64,000 bases of DNA. Source: Ranitomeya imitator (taxonomy: Eukaryota). The stretch covers positions 365,428,001 through 365,492,000 of the forward strand of contig NC_091283.1 of NCBI RefSeq assembly GCF_032444005.1. The letters are read 5' to 3'. This document shows, piece after piece, positions 1,877 through 47,590 of this stretch. The notes under the pieces were generated by a model. That model did not search any database. It was not told where the DNA came from and worked only from the letters and a program-made list of their open reading frames with translations. The translations under genes were made by a program, and so were the position numbers. The first letter of the stretch is position 1. Each line of letters starts with the position of its first letter.

Positions 1877-4006
1877 TTAGGGTTGGAATTAGGGTTGTGA
1901 TTAGGGTTATGGCTACAGTTGGGATTAGGGTTAGGGGTGTGGGGAGGTTAGTGTTGGAGGTAGAATTGAGGGGTTTCCACTGTTTAGGCACATCAGGGGT
2001 CTACAAACGCAACATGGCGCCACCATTGATTCCAGCCAATCTTGTATTCAAAAAGTCAAATGGTGCTCCCTCACTTCCGAGCCCCGACGTGCGCCCAAAC
2101 AGTGGTTTACCCCCACATATGGGGTACCAGCATACTCGGGACAAACTGCGCAACAATTATTGGGGTCCAATTTCTCCTGTTACCCTTGTGAAAATAAAAA
2201 ATTGCTTGCTAAAACATCATTTTTGAGGAAAGAAAAATGATTTTTTATTTTCACGGCTCTGCGTTGTAAACGTCTGTGAAGCACTTGGGGGTTCAAAGTG
2301 CTCACCACACATCTAGATAAGTTCCTTTCGGGGTCTAGTTTCCAAAATAGGGTCACTTATGGGGGGTTTCTACTGTTTAGCCACATCAGGGTCTCTGCAA
2401 ACGCAGCCCTTTCGCCCTCTTTTGCGGCGACTTGGGTAGCTAAGGCCATGATATCTTGGTCAGAAACTTTAACTAAGGCTCTACAGGAGAGGAACCTACC
2501 GGCGGAGTTAACAGAGATGTCAAATCAGATAGCCCTAACTGGGAGCTACCTGATCAATGCATCTTTGGATGCAGCGAATGGTGCGGCATTATCTGCCGCA
2601 AACGCAATTGCCATTAGATGGGCCCTTTGGTTGAGAACATGGTGGGCGGATTCTACCTCGAAAAAATCCCTTACAACTCTCCCATATCAAGGTGGTTGAT
2701 TATTTGGGGAAAAACTGGATCAACTCATTTCTGATTCCACAGGGGGGAAAAGCAATTTTCTCCCACAGCAAAAGATTAAACAACCCTTTTGTCGCCAGTT
2801 TCAGGCTCGTTTCAAATCCTTTCGTAATCCCAGGTGGACCCCAGCGTCAAACCCCGCTGGCCCAGGTCGACCTAATCAGGACAAAGATCATCAGATCTCC
2901 TACAGGGCAAACCCGTTGGGAAGAATGCGGTCCCAGCTACCAAGGTCAAGGAGACCTAGGTCCCATAGGTTTTCGGCCAAATGACTGGAGGCGGTATCCG
3001 ATCACCTCCAACAGAGTAGGCGGTCGTCTACTCTTCTTTCATCAGTCATGGCTGTCAGTGGTTCACGACAGGTGGGTAAGAGATCTAATGTTCTCAGGGT
3101 ACAAAATAGAGTTTCTCAGTCTCCCCCCATGGCGGTTCTTTCCCTCCCGTTTTCCCACTTCAGGATCCCAGGTACAAGCCTTGTTCGGAACTGTAGAATC
3201 CCTTCGGCTCTGCGGGGTCATCATTCCAGTCCCGAAGGAAGAGAGATTTCAGGGGTTTTATTTCAACCTGTTCATGGTTCCCAAAAAAGACGGATCTGTA
3301 AGGCCCATTCTGGACCTAAAGTTTAAACAGGTTTGTCAACCTTGGTCACTTTCGAATGGAATCTCTCCGGTCAGTCATTGCGGCAATGGAAAAGGGAGAA
3401 TTCTTGGCCTCAATAGATATTCAAGATGCTTATCTTCACATTCCCATGTTCCCTTCGCATCAAAAATTTATACGTTTTGCCGTAGGCAGCCTACATTTTC
3501 AGTTCACTGCCTTACCTTTCGGGCTGGCCACCGCACCCAGGGTATTTACAAAGGTCATGGCAGCAGTGGTATCCATCCTGCATTCCCGGGGCATACTCGT
3601 TTTGCCATACCTAGACGATCTCCTTATCAAGGGGTAGTATTTTCAAGCCTGCGAGGAAAATGTCAGCATTACCCTGGATACGCTTTCTCGCTTAGGGTGG
3701 CTGGTGAATCTAAAAAAATCATCCTTTGTGCCATCTCAGAAAATCTATTTTCTAGGGATGATCTTCAACACCTCACAAGGGTTGACAATCCTACACCGGG
3801 ACAAGGTCCTGACCCTCTGCAAAGAGGTGAGGATCCTTCGCCGGCCGACCTACCATACAATCTGGTCCTGCATGAGAGTTTTAGGAAGAATGGTGGTGGC
3901 AATAGAGGCAGTACCTTTTGTGCAATTCCATCTCTGTCCTATCCAAGATGCACTGTTGGCAGCATGGGACAAGAATCTGTATTCTCTCAATCTCAGGTGT
4001 CGTCTG

Positions 4007-4263
4007 AAGATAGGAAAATGACAGCGCTCCATCCGGGTGTAATCCAAATATGAAAATTTATTAAGCCATAAAACAGCAAACAGCAACGTTTCGACCTAAC
4101 AGGTCTTTATCATGCTTTATTATGGCTTAATAAATTTTCATATTTGGATTACACCCGGATGGAGCGCTGTCATTTTCCTATCTTCAGACTTCTACGGTCC
4201 TAGTGGGTTCCCTGGACTTGGACTGGCGCTCCGGTCAAGTGAAGTGCGGTTAGCCATCTTGCT
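4007..4263 (-). mobile_element. 257-bp micro Penelope-like insertion (foldback tail plus hammerhead-like motif) in DIRS A pol
   Basis: 16-bp direct repeat TCTCAGGTGTCGTCTG at 3991-4006 and 4264-4279; removing the insert restores pol (NLYSLNLRCRLSLQVRQALAWW). 70-bp inverted repeat 4002-4071 / 4120-4189. Confidence 0.8.
4082..4116 (-). ncRNA. Minimal type I hammerhead-like motif with variant core
   Basis: Minus strand AGC ATGATAA A GACC TGTTA GGTC GAAAC GTT GCT. The core differs from CUGANGA at positions 3 and 8. Confidence 0.5.
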
Positions 4264-6190
4264 TCTCAGGTGTCGTCTGTCTCTCCAGGTCAGACAGGCT
4301 CTTGCATGGTGGTCAACATGCCCTTCTCTATGACAAGGGAAACCCTTTCTCCCAGCCCATTGGCTGGTAGTCATGACAGACGCCAGTCTTCTCGGTTGGG
4401 GAGCAGTGTTTTGCCACCACACAGCCCAGGGACACTGGTCCTCGCGGGAGTCAACCCTCCCGATCAATCTATCGGAGATTCGGGCGATTCGGCTGGTGCT
4501 ACAACATTTTCATCTTCTAGCAGGCCGTCCTGTCCGGATTCAATCGGACAATGCCACAGCAGTGGCCTACATAAATCATCAAGGGGGTACCCGCAGCAGG
4601 GCAGCCATGCACGAGGTAAAACAGGTCCTCGACTGGGCTGAAAAGAACCACTCTGTGATTTCAGCAGTCCACATTCCGGGCGAGGAAAACTGGGCTGCGG
4701 GTTTTCTCAGTCGTCAGGGCCTTGCATCCGGGAAGTGGTCTCTCCATCCCGAGGTGTTTCAGGAAATATGTCATCGCTGGGGAACCCCGGACATGGACCT
4801 GATGCCTTCCGGAATGAGTGCCAAGGTACCCAAGTTTGTCGCCTGGTATCGAGACCCACAGGCAATCACCGTGGACTCATTCATTCTACATTGGAACCTG
4901 TTTCATCTCCCATACCTGTTTCCCCCTCTTGCGCTGCTCCCAAAGGTAGTCAGGAAGATCCAGACAGATGGAGTTCCAACAATCCTGGTTGCTCCAGATT
5001 TGCCTCGTCGGTCATGGTACGATGACCTAGTGCAGCTACTCACCAAGGTTCCTTGGCGACTTCCAGAGCACCCAGACCTACTATCTCAGGGCCCGATCTA
5101 CCACCAGAACTCAGAGGTCCTGTGTTTAATGGCCTGGCCATTGAATCTTGGATTCTGACGCAGGCCGGATTCTCACAAAAGGTTGCCGCTACCGTGATTA
5201 GCACCCGCAAATCCGTCTCAGCACGTATTTATAATCACACCTGGAAGGTTTTCTTTTCATGGTGCGGAAACCGTGGGCTTCCCCCTCTACGTTACTCCAT
5301 TCCTAACATCCTTGCTTTTCTCCAAGCCAGCCTGGATTCGGGGCTTACACCAAGTACCCTCAGAAGACAGGTATCATCCTTATCGGTTCTTTTTCAGCGC
5401 AGGATTGCCATCAATTTACAGGTGAAAACTTTTCTACAGGGAGTCACTCACATGGTACCGCCTTACAGGGCCCCCCTGGGCCTCTTCAGGATGTCTCTTT
5501 GACCTATCTTTCCTGGAAAGTCGTGTTCTTGGTGGCCATAACTTCCATTAGGCAGGTATCAGAGCTGGTGGCTCTATCCTGCCGGGCTCTGTTTCTACAT
5601 TTCCATCAGGATAAATAAAGTGGTGCTCAGGCCAGCACCCTCATTTTTCCAAAGGTGGTTTCCTCGTTCCACATTAACGAGGACATTGTCTTACCTTCTT
5701 TTTGCCCAGTGCCAACGCACCGCGTGGAAAAAGCTCTCTATACGCTAGACCTAGTGAGAGCACTAAGGAGGTACATTTCTTGGATGGCACCTTTTCGGCA
5801 GACGGATGCGCTGTTCGTCCTTCCTGAGGGTCACAGGAAGGGGCTCGCTGCATCAAGATCCACCATAGCAAGGTGGATACGATCAGCTATTCAGGAGGCC
5901 TACCGCGTCAAGGGCATGATCGTTCCGGCCGGAATCAGAGCTCACTCCACTCGAGCAGTGGGGGCTTCCTGGGCTTCGGCACCAGGCTTCGGCAGAACAG
6001 GTTTGCAAGGCAGCAACCTGATCCAGTTTGCATACCTTTTCCAAACACTATAATGTCCATACTCAGACTTTTGCAAATGCAAGCCTGGGTAGAAGGATTC
6101 TTCAGGCAGCGGTAGCGCACCTATAAGCGGCAGATGCCTGGATATTACTCCGGTGAGTCAATTTCCCACCCAGGGACTGCTTTAGGACAT

Positions 6191-6285
6191 CCCACAGTCC
6201 TGTGTCCCCCAATGAGGGGAAGGAGAAATAGGGATTTTTGTCTTACGTAAAATCCTTTTCTCCGAGACACTCATTGGGGGACCCA
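6191..6285 (+). repeat. DIRS A internal complementary region (ICR)
   Basis: ATAGGGATTTTTG...GTAAAATCCTTTTCTCCGAG...CTCATTGGGGGAC is complementary to the right terminus 6520-6594. The first half (CCCACAGTCCTGTGTCCCCCAATGAG) corresponds to the lost left terminus. Confidence 0.85.
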
Positions 6286-38294: not shown

Positions 38295-39435
38295 CACAGG
38301 TCAACAAAAAAATTTTTTTTTTCTGGTGTCCAAAATATTTTAATGAATTTGGGGTATTTTTGGGGTGCTGATTCTGAATATGCTATCAGTTTTGCCAGAT
38401 TGGCTCAAGTTTTTGAGATTTTTGGTATCTTATTTATAGCACTTGTTGGTAAATGCGACGCATCATCTCATTAATTTCTTTGTATTAGTACTTGAACTGA
38501 GCAGTTCTCAATATAGTTTTGTGTTAATTAGTGTTCTAAAAGTTTGTTCATAGCTTGATTTTTGCACTAACTTTATGTTGTTGTCTGTTTTCCAGTGAAA
38601 AGCATGAACTCATCAAGAAGAAGTTGTCTTAACGATCCAGACTCATTCTGTTACATTTGTGGTGAATACACACTGCCAATACACACTTCATCATCATCAG
38701 GTGGGGGAAGGTCAGGTAACATGGTAAACACAGGTACAGGCACATCTTCACAATGAGGGACAGGCCTTCTTGCAGATTCCATGTTAGGTTACTCCCATTT
38801 TCGTTTCTTATGCTTATTGAATCCTTGCACTTGCACTGCACAGAAATAACAGTCATCATGATGATTTTTTTGCTCTCTCCACACCATTGGAACACCAAAT
38901 TTGAAGCTTTTTCTTTGTCCTTTGCTCCATTTTCGTAATAATTCGATACATGCTTTGCACACTATGTGTGGTGCCCAAAACTTGTCTTGGTCCCCAAGCA
39001 TAACCCCAAAATAGGCAAAATACACTTTTTTTACGAAGTCTGTTATGTTTCTTCTATGTTTTGGCAGTGTGTATTCACCACAAATGTAACAGAATGAGTC
39101 TGGATCGTTAAGACAACTTCTTCTTGATGAGTTCATGCTTTTCACTGGAAAACAGACAACAACATAAAGTTAGTGCAAAAATCAAGCTATGAACAAACTT
39201 TTAGAACACTAATTAACACAAAACTATATTGAGAACTGCTCAGTTCAAGTACTAATCCAAAGAAATTAATGAGATGATGCGTCGCATTTACCAACAAGTG
39301 CTATAAATAAGATACCAAAAATCTCAAAAACTTGAGCCAATCTGGCAAAACTGATGACATATTCAGAATCAGCACCCCAAAGTTACCCTAAATTCGATGA
39401 AATATCTTTGGCACCAAAAATGCTGTTGACCAGTG
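38295..39435 (-). mobile_element. Chapaev(3)-like DNA transposon foldback derivative with truncated transposase
   Basis: CAC(A/T)GGTCAAC ... GTTGACCAGTG ends; ~380-bp inverted arms (38295-38679 / 39061-39435). ORF 38789..39145: CYICGE...GDQDKFWAPHIVCKAC...PMVWREQKNHHDDCYFC. Family assignment is from motif recall. Confidence 0.65.
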
Positions 39436-39700
39436 TATGGATTATTTAATATATCCTATCTTATGCATAAAAGCCCGGGAAGGCATAGCCTGTGAATAAC
39501 GATAAATTGGATCATTCTCTCATGTGACGTAGAAAAGAACTTTAGCAGAATTTACAATTAGGTCTCATTGTTTAAGGTGAATCCAAGATCTGATTCCTAG
39601 AATTTATTTTCTTCTGAAAGTCAATTAATCAAATGTTTTATAGGGAACTAATTCTGCCTTTACAGATTTCATTTAACAGTAAATAATCCATGACAGGATA
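39436..39700 (-). mobile_element. L1-clade ORF2 remnant, continuous with 46871-47150 across the DIRS B insertion
   Basis: The empty site reads ...LYLQIRRSIQSSPRLFILGK|YPVMDYLLLNEICKGRISSL on the minus strand. Confidence 0.6.
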
Positions 39701-40029
39701 TTTTTATTCAGTCGCCATGACAGCACAACGAGAGAGGGGATCCGCCCTTCAGGGACAGGAAACCTCAGACATAAAAAGGGCGGCACCTCACTCCCCCGCC
39801 AGTTGGTTTCCTGTCCCTGACAGCGGAACCTCTTCAGACAGACCTTGGGAAGAAGGTTGAAGAAAAGAAGCTATCCCACTCCTGACAGGCCGATACAGGT
39901 AGCGGGGGTCACCTGCCTCGGTCTGGTCAGGAGGTTGGTAGCACCACACGGCAGGGGGACTGTTGGTGTAGGTGGCAGCAGGAGGAAGCAACCCAAGGGA
40001 AGGGGTTAGCTTCTTGGGTGTCCGCGTTG

Positions 40030-40300
40030 TCATACCTGGTAAGTAGGCCGTGGAACCATGTTTGTGGGGCCTCTGGGGCCTGTACAACCGCTGCCACTGT
40101 CTGCGCGTCTGCCCTCAGCGCCGCAGCTGTGACCGGAAGGGGCGTGTCCGGATGACGCGGCGAGCGGCGCGGGGTGATGACGCGGCCGCGCATGCGCGGT
40201 AGCGCTTTTTCTCCGGCTAATGGCGGCGCCCAGGGGCGGAAGGGGGATTGTGGCCGCAGGGAGTCCGGCGCTCAGCATGGGGGCGCGGCTCACAGTGTAC
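40030..40300 (+). promoter_or_regulatory. CpG-rich internal 5' region of DIRS B (candidate promoter)
   Basis: Dense unmutated CpG; CCGGAAG (ETS-like), TGACGC twice (CRE half-sites), GCGCATGCGC (NRF1-like). Confidence 0.45.
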
Positions 40301-40412: not shown

Positions 40413-41959
40413 ATGGAGTCACCGGAGGGAACTCCGCAGCTGTGCGGTGAACAGCAGCAACCACTGGAGCAGCCACAGACAGGGAAATCTCTGAGAAGCT
40501 CCCAGCGGCGTTCTAGTGGCAGTAGTCGCGCTGGTGGAGCTAAAGCTGCTCAGAAATCTACCAAATCCTCAGGCCGTAAGGATTCTCCGGCTAGAGAGGA
40601 CCCCCGATCACGGTACCATTTGTTGCAAGGATGGGTAAGTGAGCTACGTGAAAGTACGCTTTTTTGATTGCTGTCCCTCCTTGTATTCCCTCTCTCCTTA
40701 TCCAGGGGAGAAAAAGTACTTCCAAAGCCAAGCATAGGGAGTGTGCCGTATGTACAGAGCCACTTCCAGATGGGCATAAAAAGAAGCTGTGCAGATCCTG
40801 CATACAGCGCTTAATCGAGGAGGAGGCCCCTGACCTGACATCTACCCTTAGGGACATGGTTAAACAGGAGGTCAGGGATTCCTTAAAATCCAGTTCTCAC
40901 AGGACAAGGTCCCAAAAGAGGATAGAAGTCCCATCCCCAGTTTCAGATGTGGATTCAGATGGGGTGAGCTCGGATTCTCATCCATCATCTTCATCTTCAG
41001 AGGACGTAGAATCTAGTCGAGCATGTCTGTCACTAGACAGGATTAATCACCTAGTGAAGGCTGTCAACAACACTATGGGGATTGAAGAGACCCAGTCAGA
41101 ATTCTCCATTCAGGACATTATGTTCAAGGGCATAGACCGTAAATCTCGAAGGGTTTTTCCTATAGTGGAAAAAATCAAGTCACTGATTACGAAGGAATGG
41201 AAGAAGCCCAAAAGGAAGGGGTCACTGCCACCAGCATTTAAAAGAAGGTATCCGTTCGAGGAAGAGGCTTCAGCTTCTTGGGACAAGGTCCCGAAGTTGG
41301 ATGCAGCGGTGGCCAAGGTGTGCAAAAAGTCTTCTCTTCCATTTGAGGATCTAGGTAACCTAAAGGACCCGCTTGATAGAAAAGCTGATGTGTTCCTTAA
41401 AGGGGCTTGGGAGACTTCTGCGGGATCCTTGAGACCAGCAATTGGGGCCACTTGCACAGCTCGGTCCTTGATGGTGTGGCTAGGCCACCTGGAAGACCAA
41501 CTCAAGGATAAAGTTCCTAGAAATGAAATCCTATCCTCTATGCCCATGATCCAAGATGCTGCAGCCTTCCTTTCAGATGCGTCAGCAGATTCAGTTAGGC
41601 TGGCCGCAAGATCCTCAGCCTTATCCAACGCAGCCCGCAGAGCACTTTGGATAAAATGTTGGCCAGGTAATTTACAGGCCAGATCAAAACTATGTGGCAT
41701 CCTCTGTGAAGGGGTTCATTTGTTTGGTCCGGTACTAGATGAGCTGCTTGAGAAGGCAGGTGATTCTAAGAAGTGGTTCCCTCTATTGAGAAAACCCTTT
41801 TATAGGCGTGATGACAACAGAGGATGGATAGAGAGCCAAATAGAGATTCGTCCAGATATAACAGCAGCAGAAGAAGAGGTAGGGGATATATGTTTAACTC
41901 CCCTCGGGACTCTAAGAAGCCTCAATGACTGGCGGTCCAGGTGGGCGGTAGGCTTTTAG
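40413..41959 (+). CDS. DIRS B gag, two exons (40413-40634 and 40706-41959), with an inferred 1-nt deletion near 41826
   Basis: In-frame GT-AG join gives ...HLLQGW|GRKSTSK...; CAVC-x12-CRSC zinc motif; ALSNAARRALWIKCW, LFGPVLDELL. The alternative frame after 41826 gives the expected RRRGRG...KKPQ* end. Confidence 0.85.
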
Positions 41960-43823
41960 CCTTCTACCCAGCCTGGTTGAGGATCACCAATAGTCCGTGG
42001 ATTCTCAGTATCATTAAAGAAGGTTTAAAGTTCCAGTTTCATCATATCCCTCAGGACAAATTTAAATTAACTCCTATCCGTTCTTCTCCTGCAGAACAGT
42101 TGGCATTGGAGTCAGAGGTTCAAGATCTCCAACAAAAGGGAGTTCTTATTAGAGTACCCACGGAAGAACGAGGTATGGGGTTTTATTCCCCTTTATTTCT
42201 GGTAAAGAAGCCAGATGGGTCATATCGTACCATCATCAATCTGAAAGGCCTGAATGAATTCTTGCTGATCCCATTCTTTAAAATGGAATCTGTGAAAAGG
42301 CAATAAAGCTTCTTTTTCACAATTGCTTCATGGTTGTCTTAGATCTGAAAGACGCCTATTACCATGTCCCGATACATGTAAATCATCAGCGCTTTCTCAG
42401 GGTGGCGGTTTCTCTTGCCGGCACAGTAGAGCACTTTCAATATCGGGCACTCCCCTTTGGTGTTGCGGTCGCACCACGGGTTTTCACTAAGATTATGGTA
42501 GAGGTTATGGCACACCTTCATGAGCAAAACATACTAATAATTCCCTACCTGGATGATTTATTGATTGTTGGGCGTTCAGAGTCACACTGTAAAGAGCAGT
42601 TGGAGAAGGTGATGGCAGCATTACATAACTTAGGATGGATTATCAATCTCAAAAAATCGCGTCTTCAGCCCTTAACATCACAGCATTTCTTGGGTCTTAT
42701 TGTAGATTCGGGTCAGCAGGAATGTCGCCTGCCGGACTCAAAGGTTGATAGTATTCATCGTCTGGCCTCCAGAGCTATTAATAATCCCGTTATCTCCTTA
42801 AGAGGTGCAATGTCACTTTTGGGTTCTCTTACTTCTTGTTTTCCGGCGGTGCTGTGGGCACAGTTTCACTCCAGGTCTCTGCAATGGGATGTTCTACATA
42901 ATTTTCGTCGGCTGGGCGCTAACCTTGATAGAGAAAATTTTTTATCTATGGAGGCCACTAATTCACTAATTTGGTGGACACACATTCCGAATCTGCGTAG
43001 AGGGGTACCCTGGACAAATCAAATAACGCGAGTAATAACAACTGATGCTAGCCCCACGGGTTGGGGGGCACACTGGGAAGATGATTGCATTCAGGGGCTG
43101 TGGTCCCAGTCTGAGCGAGACACGCCTTCCAATCTAAAAGAATTGTTGGCGGTAGAGCGTGCTTTGAATGGATTCCTTATACCTCTGCAGGGTAGACATG
43201 TCAGACTACTCTCTGACAACCAGGTGACCGTTGCTTATATTAACCACCAAGGAGGTACGCGGTCTAGGTCATTAATGAACGTTACAAATCGTATTTTTCA
43301 GATGGCCGAAAATCACCTACTCTCCCTTACGGCCCTTCATATAAAGGGAAAGCTAAATACCATGGCCGATTATTTAAGCCGCAACGAGCTCAAACAAGGG
43401 GACTGGTCTCTAAAACCGGCTGTCTTCAATCAGATCGTACGTTTATGGGGATGTCCAGAAATAGATCTTTTTGCCAGTCGAGGAAACAGGAAACTACATC
43501 AATTTTGTTCCCTAAATCCGGAGGACAACCCGTTTGCAGTCGACACTCTTCTAATCTCCTGGAACTTCAGTCTCGCCTATGCCTTTCCCCCTCTAAATCT
43601 GATTCCTATAGTTCTGAGGAAAATTCGGGAAGACCGGGCCCGAGTGATATTAATAGCCCCGTTCTGGCCCAGAAGGTCGTGGTTCCCATGGCTAAGAAGC
43701 ATGTCCATTTCCCAGCCATGGATCCTCCCAGAAATACCAGACCTCCTTTCCCAGGGTCCAGTCCTGCATCCACGAGTAACCAACTTACACCTGACAGCGT
43801 GGAATTTGAGAGGTCACTTCTGA
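41941..43823 (+). pseudogene. DIRS B pol (RT, RNase H, N6-adenine methyltransferase-like), broken by one frameshift at ~42298
   Basis: FYSPLFLVKKPDGSYRTIINLK; LDLKDAYYHVPI; LPFGVAVAPRVFTK; PYLDDLL; TDAS; SDNQ..YINHQGGTRS; DLFAS...YAFPP. Confidence 0.92.
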
Positions 43824-44833
43824 AGGGGAAGGGATTTTCTCAAAATCTTATAAATACACTGCTTAAAAGTAGGAAAACCTCCACGACAAACATTTATGTT
43901 AGGGTTTGGAGAAGATTCCTATCGAGTTCAGGGGCACAAATTGATCAAAGACCTGATATTACTCAAATCTTAAAATTTTTACAAAAGGGCCTAGAGTTAG
44001 GCTTAGCCACCAGCACCCTTAGAGTTCAGGTTTCAGCTCTAGGGGCGCTATATAATTCTAACTTAGCCAGTAATCACTGGATAACAAGGTTTTTCAAGGC
44101 GGTTACCAGATCCAGGCCGGTTATTAAACAAAAAATAGTCCTATGGGACCTAAATCTTATGCTCTCAGCTCTAACGCAAGCCCTGTTCGAGCCTATTGAC
44201 TCTGCTCCAATCAAGATCCTGTCGGTCAAAACGGCCCTCTTAGTTGCCCTCACATCCGCGAGAAGGGTTAGTGATCTACAGGCATTGTCCAGACAACATC
44301 CATACATGCAGTTTAGGGAAGATAGAGTGGTTATGAGACCTGACCCTCTTTATCTTCCAAAGGTTGCTTCAAAATTTCATAGATCCCAAGAAGTGGTCCT
44401 ACCTTCATTTTGTTCTAATCCCTCTAACGATAAGGAACAGAGATTTCATTGTTTGGACGTACGAAGGTGTCTTCTCAAATACATTTCAGTAACAGACACC
44501 TGGAAAAAAGATCACTCCTTATTTTTATCCTACCAGGGAGTTAGAAAGGGGCTTAGGGTATTAAAAAATACACTAGCCAGATGGATTAGGGAGGCGATAT
44601 CTCTTGCTTATACCGCAGGTGGCGTGGAAATTCCAGAAGGTATAAAGGCTCACTCCACTCGTGCGGTAGCCACATCCTGGGCTGAGAGAGCAGAGGTATC
44701 GATTGAGGACATTTGTAAGGCGGCCACATGGTCTTCTCCATCTACCTTTCTTAGACACTATAGATTAGATCTAGGTGGCTCCTCCGACCTCACGTTTGGG
44801 AGAAGGGTGCTGGAGGCAGTGGTCCCTCCCTAG
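43445..44833 (+). CDS. DIRS B tyrosine recombinase (intact ORF overlapping the pol 3' end)
   Basis: TSARRVSDL (R), KAHSTRAVATSWA (H-x-x-R), FLRHYRLD (Y); 462-aa open frame. Confidence 0.93.
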   Translation: MGMSRNRSFCQSRKQETTSILFPKSGGQPVCSRHSSNLLELQSRLCLSPSKSDSYSSEENSGRPGPSDINSPVLAQKVVVPMAKKHVHFPAMDPPRNTRPPFPGSSPASTSNQLTPDSVEFERSLLKGKGFSQNLINTLLKSRKTSTTNIYVRVWRRFLSSSGAQIDQRPDITQILKFLQKGLELGLATSTLRVQVSALGALYNSNLASNHWITRFFKAVTRSRPVIKQKIVLWDLNLMLSALTQALFEPIDSAPIKILSVKTALLVALTSARRVSDLQALSRQHPYMQFREDRVVMRPDPLYLPKVASKFHRSQEVVLPSFCSNPSNDKEQRFHCLDVRRCLLKYISVTDTWKKDHSLFLSYQGVRKGLRVLKNTLARWIREAISLAYTAGGVEIPEGIKAHSTRAVATSWAERAEVSIEDICKAATWSSPSTFLRHYRLDLGGSSDLTFGRRVLEAVVPP

Positions 44834-44856: not shown

Positions 44857-44941
44857 TCTCTCGTTGTGCTGTCATGGCGACTGAATAAATACATACGCTA
44901 CTCACCTGGTAGCAGTGTTTTTTCAGGAGCCATGACAGCAC
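44857..44941 (+). repeat. DIRS B internal complementary region (ICR)
   Basis: 44857-44889 is the reverse complement of the left terminus; 44890-44941 is the reverse complement of the right terminus; the halves join through AAA. Confidence 0.95.
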
Positions 44942-45032
44942 CCTTATATTCCCTACCCTCTTTTGGCTTATTTGGATCAACACTTCCTTTAGTTAATTCC
45001 TAAGTTATTCACTGGGTGAATTGTACCATATA

Positions 45033-46681
45033 CAGTTAGGTCCATATATATTTGGACAGAGGCAACATTTTTCTAATTTTGGTTATAGACATGACCGCAA
45101 TGAATTTTAAACAAAACAATTCAGATGCAGTTGAAGTTCAGACTTTCAGCTTTCATTTGAGGGTATCCACATTAAAATTGGATGAAGGGTTTAGGAGTTT
45201 CAGCTCCTTAACATGTGCCACCCTGTTTTTAAAGGGACCAAAAGTAATTGGACAGATTAAATAATTTTAAATAAAATGTTCATTTCTAGTACTTGGTTGA
45301 AAGCCCTTTGTTGGCAATGACTGCCTGAAGTCTTGAACTCATGGACATCAAAAGACGCTGTGCTTCCTCCTTTTTGATGCTCTACCAGGCCTTCACTGCG
45401 GTGGTTCTCAGTTGCTGTTTGTTTGTGGGCCTTTCTGTCTGAAGTTTAGTCTTTAACAAGTGAAATGCATGCTCAATTGGGTTGAGATCAGGTGACTGAC
45501 TTGGCCATTCAAGAATATTCCACTTCTTTGCTTTAATAAACTCCTTGGCTGCTTTGCATTTATGTTTTGGGTCATTGTCCATCTGTAGTATGAAACGACG
45601 ACCAATCAGTTTGGCTGCATTTGGCTGGATCTGAGCACACAGTATGGCTCTGAATACCTCAGAATTCATTCAGCTGCTTCTGTCCTGTGTCACATCATCA
45701 ATAAACACTAGTGACCCAGTGCCACTGGCAGCCATGCATGCCCGAGCCATCACACTGCCTCCGCTGTGTTTTACAGATGATGTGGTATTCTTTGGATCAT
45801 GAGTTGTACCACGCCTTCGCTATACTTTTCTCTTTCCTTCATTCTGGTAGAGGTTGATCTTGGTTTCATCTGTCCAAAGAATGTTCTTCCAGAACTGTGC
45901 TGGCTTTTTTAGATTTTTTTTTAGCAAAGTCCAGTCTAGCCTTTTTATTCTTGATGCTTATGAGTGGCTTGCACCATGCAGTGAAACCTCTGTATTTACT
46001 TTCATGCAGTCTTCTCTTTATGGTAGATTTGGATATTGATACGCCGACCTCCTGGAGAGTGTTGGTCACTTGGTTGGCTGTTGTGAAGGGGTTTTTCTTC
46101 GCCATGGAGATTATTCTGCGATCATCCACCACTGTTGTCTTCCGTGGGCGCCCAGGTCTTTTTGCCTTGATGAGTTCACCAGTGCTTTCTTTGTTTCTCA
46201 GGATGTACCAAACTGTAGATTGTGCCACTCCTAATATTGTAGCAATTTCTCGGATGGGTTTTTTCTGTTTTCGCAGCTTAAGGATGGCTTGTTTCACCTG
46301 CATGGAGAGCTCCTTTGACCGCATGTTTACTTCACAGCAAAACCTTCCAAATGCAAGCAGCACACCTCAAATCAACTCCAGGTCTTTTATTTGCTTAATT
46401 GAGAATTACATAACGAAGGGATTGCCCACACCTGTCCATGAAATAGCCTTGGAGTCAATAGTCCAATTACTTTTGGTCCTTTTAAAACCAGGGTAGCACA
46501 TGTTAAGGAGCTGAAACTCCAAAACCCTTCATCCAATTTTAATGTGGATACCCTCAAATGAAAGCTGAAAGTCTGGACTTCAACTGTATCTGAATTGTTT
46601 TGTTTAAAATTCATTGTGGTAATGTCTATAACCAAAATTAGAAAAATGTTGCCTCTGTCCAAATATATATGGACCTAACTG
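45033..46681 (-). mobile_element. Tc1-family transposon (same family as 22269-23915) nested in DIRS B
   Basis: TA|CAGTTAGGTCC ... GGACCTAACTG|TA; frameshifted transposase ORFs 45866..46363 and 45382..45669. Confidence 0.95.
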
Positions 46682-47590
46682 TATTAATATTGTTTATGTG
46701 CTACTAACCTAGAAGGTCCTTTCATACTCTGTAAACCAACTGGCGGGGGAGTGAGGTGCCGCCCTTTTTATGTCTGAGGTTTCCTGTCCCTGAAGGGCGG
46801 ATCCCCTCTCTCGTTGTGCTGTCATGGCTCCTGAAAAAACACTGCTACCAGGTGAGTAGCGTACGTATTTCCCCAAAATGAAAAGTCGGGGTGAAGACTG
46901 AATAGAACGTCTTATCTGCAAATAAAGCAAGAAATCTGAATCCTCTAATCCTTCTTGTATAACAAATCTCTCTTCTAATATCTGTGACAATAATTATTCC
47001 TTTTTTTTTATCCAAAGTTCAGCCCTGTAAGTAATGGGGGAAATCCGTATTATCCCACAGTGGGAACATGGAGGCTGGGCAGCCCACCCACAAGAGGTTT
47101 TTCTTAAATGTCTGACAAAATTTAGTTATAAAAAAAGGACAGCAATTGATACATAAAGGTCTGATTTTTTTTTTTTTTTTTTACCTACAAGAGCCTGAAA
47201 GATATTTTCTCTGTTAAGAATTCTACAAATGTCCATTATATAAGAACTTGAACTGGAGCCGTCCATGGTTGAGTCTGAGAGGGCAGAAAATAAAAGTCCC
47301 CCTTTTATTAGAAGAGTAAATTAAGTCAACCCTTTTCGGACCAGAGTATTTCTCTATTTTACACTTTTTTAATTATTCCTTGTCTTTTTCCAAGAGCCAT
47401 AACTGTTTTTTTTCCCTCAACATAGATGTCGTGGCGTTTTTGTTTCTGTGGGACAAGTTGTAGTTTTAAATTACACCATTCAGTTTGCCATAGAATGTGC
47501 TGAAAAACAGGGGAAAAAAATCTAAGTGGGAAGAAATTGTGAAAAAATGCAATTCTGCCATTGTTTTTTTTTTTTTTTGTTCGATTTTAA

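Follow-up and report, generated by a model that had tools for sequence, protein, structure and literature searches.

A 71-nt interval in the gag region of a DIRS-type retrotransposon from the dendrobatid frog Ranitomeya imitator is probably part of a genuine U2-type intron belonging to the clade of DIRS elements with a LAP2alpha-type gag, with its acceptor at 40705/40706. The element lies in the window, by which we mean the whole 64,000-nt stretch of contig NC_091283.1 analysed here (positions 365,428,001 to 365,492,000 of the forward strand). Across the clade, the intron would separate a short AUG leader exon from the main gag exon. From the arrangement of the sequences we consider it likely that the interval is spliced, that unspliced RNA is reverse transcribed and that spliced RNA is required to make full-length Gag, zinc motif included. 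The gag intron looks real at the level of the family, and the exact splice suggested by the window copy appears to hold in part only.

Splice-like signals flank the 71-nt interval

Exon 1 starts with the ATG at 40413 and ends with the codons CAA GGA TGG, its final letter being 40634. GTAAGT follows at 40635-40640, in a context (TGG/GTAAGT) that agrees with the donor consensus CAG/GTAAGT at seven of nine positions. A branch-like TTGAT (40664-40668) lies 38 nt upstream of the acceptor, 17 of the 20 letters before the CAG at 40703-40705 are pyrimidines, no AG occurs in the 49 nt preceding the acceptor, and the next exon opens with GGG AGA AAA from 40706. Excision of the 71 nt joins the open reading frame (ORF) starting at 40413 to the gag ORF, with phase 0 at both junctions in the window copy. 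Without splicing, the frame from the ATG at 40413 stops at 40665-40667, giving 84 aa. The coordinates and motifs of the original prediction (ATG 40413, GTAAGT 40635, TTGAT, CAG 40705, a length of 71 nt) were all recovered, as was its stop at 40667 in unspliced RNA. The interval carries the donor, the branch-like site, the pyrimidine tract with YAG and the AG-free zone of a U2-type GT-AG intron.

A search of both strands of the 64-kb window for GTRAGT with at least 15 pyrimidines in 18 and YAG at 45-160 nt returned three places, compared to a mean of 0.9 in dinucleotide shuffles. One of the three real places falls exactly between the two gag ORFs. A splice-like layout of this kind is unlikely to arise by chance.

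Copies of the same family were compared using the contigs of four public runs: X15, presumed to be DNA, and X1, X13 and X12, small runs that we guess may be RNA, none being on record as such. Run contigs drop rare forms and can show presence, not absence. Among the copies, substitutions inside the 71 nt were found at 40658 (G>A), 40664 (T>C) and 40669 (T>A), together with a 2-nt deletion at 40659 and a 1-nt deletion at 40660. At the acceptor, other copies carry 40703 C>T, which keeps YAG. The listed indels number two in these 71 nt and six in the 5' untranslated region, with only four in ~4.4 kb of coding sequence. The interior of the interval behaves as non-coding sequence, and tolerance of indels there is one of the signs that the original prediction had proposed looking for. 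The interval is present at high word depth in the contigs of the DNA run, and so in many copies. The original prediction had also called for a search for intron-less copies, and none was present among the 1044 contigs of the DNA run placed at ≥90%.

The same layout recurs in six diverged DIRS families

We examined six other diverged families in Logan and ENA contigs (L001, L002-4, L005, L006, L007/8 and L011). Their gag is 37-46% identical to that of the window copy by tblastn, a comparison covering four families, with L007/8 and L011 outside it. All six begin with an ATG exon of 18-23 codons that ends at a phase-0 GT donor (GTATTG, GTAAGA, GTAGGA, GTAAGG, GTGAGT and GTAGGA). Five families were read by script, and in these an interval of 80-221 nt follows, closing with a pyrimidine tract and YAG; for L011 the reading was by eye. 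With the window family included and L011 left aside, the interval lengths are 71/93, 80, 102, 192, 198 and 221 nt. The acceptor of all six is in phase 0 and lies 12-23 codons before a conserved C-x2-C-x12-C-x2-C (C2C2) motif, and the AG-free zones before the acceptor measure 38-59 nt across the seven families. A further contig, L009, begins right at the comparable acceptor. Position and phase are conserved around a variable interior in all seven families, as in a U2-type intron, and this phase-0 layout of GT, pyrimidine tract and YAG is hard to explain without splicing.

In the window copy the C2C2 motif lies at 40742-40801 and the first Met of the main gag exon comes only at codon 51. The first Met follows the zinc motif in all families, at codons 36-174. 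These positions bear on the possibility that there is no splicing at all, that translation of Gag from unspliced RNA begins either at a non-AUG codon or at the Met found at codon 51 of exon 2, and that the leader is an upstream ORF. The lack of any spliced contig in the runs fits such a reading, as do the RefSeq models P0001 and P0088, which start at Met without a leader, and the L001 interval, which can be read through without a stop. Against it, all seven families conserve the C2C2 motif and basic stretch ahead of the first Met and show the same splice-like layout with AG-free zones of 38-59 nt, and we regard it as very unlikely. L001 is an exception within the clade: its 102-nt interval is stop-free and in frame, and this family could make Gag from spliced or unspliced RNA.

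A one-letter difference in a C-run changes the in-frame donor

The C-run at 40601-40605 is one C longer in the contigs of other copies, accounting for all of the depth in X15 (348/348) and X13 (5.8/5.8). One X1 contig is without the extra C, as in the window copy. Related gene models of two subfamilies agree with the longer run, with 11 of 11 reading ...DPP... where the window copy reads ...DPR.... In this majority state, the leader past the C-run shares the frame of exon 2, and the 93 nt between them (40613-40705) contain two in-frame stops (40640-42 and 40649-51). This puts GTAAGT in phase 1, where it no longer fits the gag frame, and the donor that keeps the frame is a weak ACG/GTACCA at 40613, 22 nt upstream of GTAAGT and in phase 0. 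Removal from GTAAGT restores the frame in the window copy only, and removal from 40613 in the majority state only. The 71-nt interval of the window copy fits in frame because its C-run is one letter shorter. The exact in-frame 71-nt splice thus appears to be a peculiarity of one defective copy, which is for the most part a correction: the original prediction of such an intron stands for the window copy and falls for most copies and for the young relatives annotated in RefSeq, where the in-frame donor is the one at 40613. To judge from the two sites, signal strength should favour GTAAGT and frame conservation the upstream GT.

Since leader and gag share a frame in the majority state, we considered whether the family has a single continuous gag ORF through 40613-40705 that a copy-specific frameshift has broken in the window. 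The two stops in the shared frame, the 1- and 2-nt deletions carried there by other copies, RefSeq gene spans that are longer than the coding sequence, and the interrupted layout of six other families all contradict this. A continuous ORF is largely refuted and extremely improbable. The original prediction had likewise distinguished the interval from a copy-specific frameshift, and the same architecture in the six diverged families bears it out on this point.

Gene models provide further information on the junction. RefSeq models P0002 and P0087-P0091 join ...DPPST/GRKS, the junction of the upstream donor, and models with this junction are found at ~9 R. imitator loci of a sister subfamily. 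One 475-aa product with the upstream junction is represented by four RefSeq accessions on three contigs, and the gene span of P0002 exceeds its coding sequence by 89 nt. The L001 donor, ACG/GTATTG, resembles the upstream donor at 40613. The older R. imitator models P0077-P0085 were rejected as evidence on donor choice, as they pick whichever GT fits the frame (compare P0079 with P0083). The leaders of three of these, P0083-85, are 89-93% identical to the window leader. The 84-aa leader ORF gave no match in a word-indexed search, and an exhaustive representative search with the leader returned only known gene models and one weak unrelated match.

It is also conceivable that the family as a whole relies in vivo on GTAAGT at 40635 as its donor, the 5-C state being the functional one and the 71-nt intron the real one. 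GTAAGT matches the consensus at seven of nine positions compared to four of nine for the upstream GT, it restores the frame exactly in the window copy, and one X1 contig shares the shorter C-run; six of the older models (P0077-78, P0080 and P0083-85) also use GTAAGT, but with a different acceptor. Against this stand the longer C-run at all depth in the DNA run and X13, the DPP reading of all 11 gene models from two subfamilies, the multi-locus intact gag models of the sister subfamily with the upstream junction, and the defects of the window copy elsewhere (its pol frame and Tc1 insert). We judge a family-wide GTAAGT donor unlikely.

Several observations weigh against a spliced gag intron in this family. 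The contigs of the four runs, presence-only data of uncertain RNA status, contain no joint at 40634/40706 or 40612/40706, and an X13 contig (40506-40694) crosses the donor unspliced. The gene models are ORF-driven predictions, the older of which pick any GT that fits the frame. In the majority state the in-frame donor has only four of nine matches, with a near-perfect GTAAGT 22 nt downstream, and the spliceosome should favour this GTAAGT, the product of which is out of frame in most copies.

The host element and its surroundings

The DIRS-type (tyrosine-recombinase) retrotransposon at 39.7-46.9 kb of the window comes from a dendrobatid frog and is a defective copy (Table 1). The assignment follows from the presence of a reverse transcriptase (RT), a tyrosine recombinase (YR) and a LAP2alpha-type gag together with inverted terminal repeats (ITRs) and an internal complementary region (ICR). 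As in the DIRS order, RT/RNase H is combined with a tyrosine recombinase and not with a DDE integrase, and inverted-repeat analysis recovered both the ITRs and the ICR; positions 39698-39735 of the left ITR also pair with the latter. The closest proteins are from dendrobatid frogs, with identity up to 90% in R. imitator, and YR sequences from other DIRS contigs match that of the window element at 43-48% identity. The copy is defective because its pol frame is broken, between ~42290 and ~42330, and a Tc1/mariner-type transposon has inserted. Contigs of other copies show one-letter length differences in pol at 42294 and 42298. The Tc1/mariner-type insert contains broken ORF pieces on the minus strand at 45382-45669 and 45866-46363, the first of which we take, from its appearance by eye, to be Tc1-type transposase-like.

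Table 1. Coordinates of the DIRS-type element and of its candidate splice signals in the window.
Feature	Positions	Strand	Description
Left ITR	39698..39809	+	Inverted repeat, 39703-39809 pairing with 46733-46839 (107 nt, 97%)
Gag leader exon (exon 1)	40413..40634	+	AUG and Ser/Gln/Arg-rich peptide; last letter 40634 with GTAAGT as donor, 40612 with the upstream donor
C-run setting the phase of exon 1	40601..40605	+	5 C in the window copy, one letter longer in other copies
Upstream candidate donor ACG/GTACCA	40613..40618	+	4/9 matches to CAG/GTAAGT; 93-nt intron
71-nt interval	40635..40705	+	GTAAGT donor, TTGAT branch-like site, pyrimidine tract, CAG acceptor
Main gag exon	40706..41959	+	Basic stretch at start; LAP2alpha-type domain PF11560, E=3e-13
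Pol (RT/RNase H)	41941..43823	+	PF00078 (RVT_1), E=1.5e-18; PF17917 below Pfam's cut-off
Tyrosine recombinase ORF	43445..44833	+	PF00589, E=0.001, below Pfam's cut-off
ICR	44857..44941	+	Pairs with left ITR and with right ITR
Tc1/mariner-type transposon between ICR and right ITR	45030..46684	-	224-nt terminal inverted repeats, 96%
Right ITR	46733..46870	-	Pairs with left ITR and ICR

In three contigs of other families (L001:2081-4954, L005:2371-5232 and L007:1949-4810), the YR frame is open for ~1.4-1.5 kb upstream of the YR-homologous part. These extended YR ORFs of 953-957 aa have no Pfam match, and they overlap the RT/RNase H frame in L001 and L005.

Ahead of exon 1, window 40130-40300 is rich in CpG and contains GCGCATGCGC at 40188-40197 and repeated TGACGC; upstream of exon 1 in two other families, TGACGTCA is found (L001:400-480 and L007:380-440). 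The region may act as an internal promoter, its motifs resembling CRE/NRF1 boxes. An inverted repeat lies at window 38320-39420, with 364-nt arms (96%) and a 373-nt spacer, and an identical N-terminal peptide (MKSMNSSRRSCLNDPDSFCYICGEYTL...) is encoded by each arm, the strands being opposite. A second DIRS copy, diverged and 5'-truncated, lies at window ~2300-6200 (+) and retains a gag remnant, RT and YR. It is 27-43% identical to the main element and is without the intron region.

A possible second acceptor inside pol

A strong acceptor-like site, ttaactcctatccgttcttctcctgcag/AA, is located inside pol at 42094/42095 (window 42072-42178). It is followed by a 78-nt piece and then by a donor, CGAG/GTATGG, at 42172/42173. 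Nine older R. imitator models connect the leader GTAAGT donor to this pol acceptor and use the 78-nt piece as an exon. In the majority state of the C-run, the GTAAGT-to-pol join is in frame and would give leader-EQLALESEV…RT. The weak donor at 40613 might then serve the gag acceptor and the strong GTAAGT the pol acceptor, one AUG exon supplying separate Gag and Pol mRNAs. If true, a tyrosine-recombinase retrotransposon would here be using subgenomic RNAs in the manner of a retrovirus. No joint at 40634/42095 was present in the contigs of the four runs (presence-only data). L001 and L002 do not conserve the pol acceptor at the corresponding position, and L005 has a different pyrimidine tract and CAG ~9 codons downstream of it. 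We consider this two-donor, two-acceptor scheme decidedly improbable.

Discussion

In the mechanism that we favour, splicing would remove an intron between the leader with its AUG and the main gag exon, and reverse transcriptase would copy unspliced RNA. Since every examined copy and family keeps the intron, the RNA that is copied has presumably not been spliced, in agreement with the original prediction. Full-length Gag would need the AUG of exon 1 after intron removal because the C2C2 motif precedes any Met of exon 2. The original claim that Gag is made only from spliced mRNA is supported by this position of the motif, and is weakened by the stop-free 102-nt intron of L001. The weak donor at 40613 may leave much of the RNA unspliced, as in retroviruses. 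That spliced RNA yields no intron-less copies could, speculatively, be due to a signal in the intron needed for copying, or to a benefit of the intron. A tissue- or germline-regulated splicing switch, as the original prediction envisaged, is pure speculation. Intron-less transcription units are subject to surveillance of the HUSH kind (PMC8770142), and a retained intron may possibly shield the element from it.

Introns that are retained after retrotransposition have been described in Penelope-like elements (PLEs; Arkhipova et al. 2003, as cited in PMC8557442). On intron retention, PMC8557442 describes PLEs as 'highly unusual among retroelements', with no DIRS case named. Genomic copies of PLEs and of the element described here both keep a spliceosomal intron, conserved near the 5' end. 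PLEs use target-primed reverse transcription and a GIY-YIG nuclease, and their intron is in the 5' untranslated region or promoter. In contrast, the window element is a YR-type DIRS whose intron would split the gag coding sequence, so that splicing would be needed for the protein. With its YR and DIRS-type ITR/ICR, it falls outside the PLE clade.

Spliced subgenomic Gag mRNAs are produced by the Ty1/Copia elements EVD and BARE and by Drosophila copia (PMC5580714, PMC3735527). The scheme proposed here resembles theirs in having separate RNA pools for translation and replication, an amount of Gag set by splicing and an unspliced template. In Ty1/Copia, however, splicing removes pol and so shifts the Gag:Pol ratio upwards, while the unspliced RNA too encodes Gag; in the window DIRS a short 5' intron would lie within gag, and from the first AUG unspliced RNA encodes only a peptide of 84 aa (18-57 aa in the other families).

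Retroviruses have a major 5' splice donor, and their suboptimal splice sites leave much RNA unspliced, which serves as the genome. Retroviral Gag is translated from unspliced RNA, and the spliced RNAs encode env or accessory genes. The DIRS arrangement would share the donor near the 5' end, the weak signals and the unspliced genome, but with the roles reversed, as Gag would need splicing. The proposed scheme would combine traits of PLEs, Ty1/Copia elements and retroviruses within another order of elements.

In the order of its parts, its LAP2alpha-type ORF1, RT/RNase H, YR, ITRs and ICR, the element is the same as published DIRS1-like elements. An overview of DIRS elements (Piednoel 2011, PMC3266345), a Xenopus survey (PMC9210276) and a study of the origin of LAP2alpha (PMC4495291) treat ORF1 as one ORF, and introns or splicing in DIRS elements are not mentioned in these three papers. 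Our literature search found no description of DIRS introns; Goodwin & Poulter 2001 was outside its scope, and a prior description is possible.

TMPO/LAP2alpha and ZNF451 have each captured DIRS gag as an exon that is alternatively spliced (PMC4495291). A ready-made 3' splice site before gag could help explain this capture, and also the many chimeric gene models in frogs.

Frog gene models that fuse DIRS gag or leader pieces to host domains, among them UBC, spectrin, HSP60, KRAB/zinc finger, SDHA and SRP72, were observed (P0023, P0027, P0030, P0059, P0062, P0066, P0069, P0074 and P0076-P0085). These chimeric host-DIRS models are either annotation artefacts or real exonisation driven by splice sites that the element itself supplies.

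Intron loss is what one would expect of retrotransposons, and a clade-wide, phase-conserved intron in gag stands against this expectation. If the intron is genuine, these DIRS elements must keep spliced RNA from being reverse transcribed, or else gain from the intron. Annotation of DIRS ORF1 would be affected as well, since taking ORF1 as one ORF overlooks both the AUG exon and the zinc motif. For the elements themselves, such an intron would build in a separation of RNA for translation from RNA for copying.
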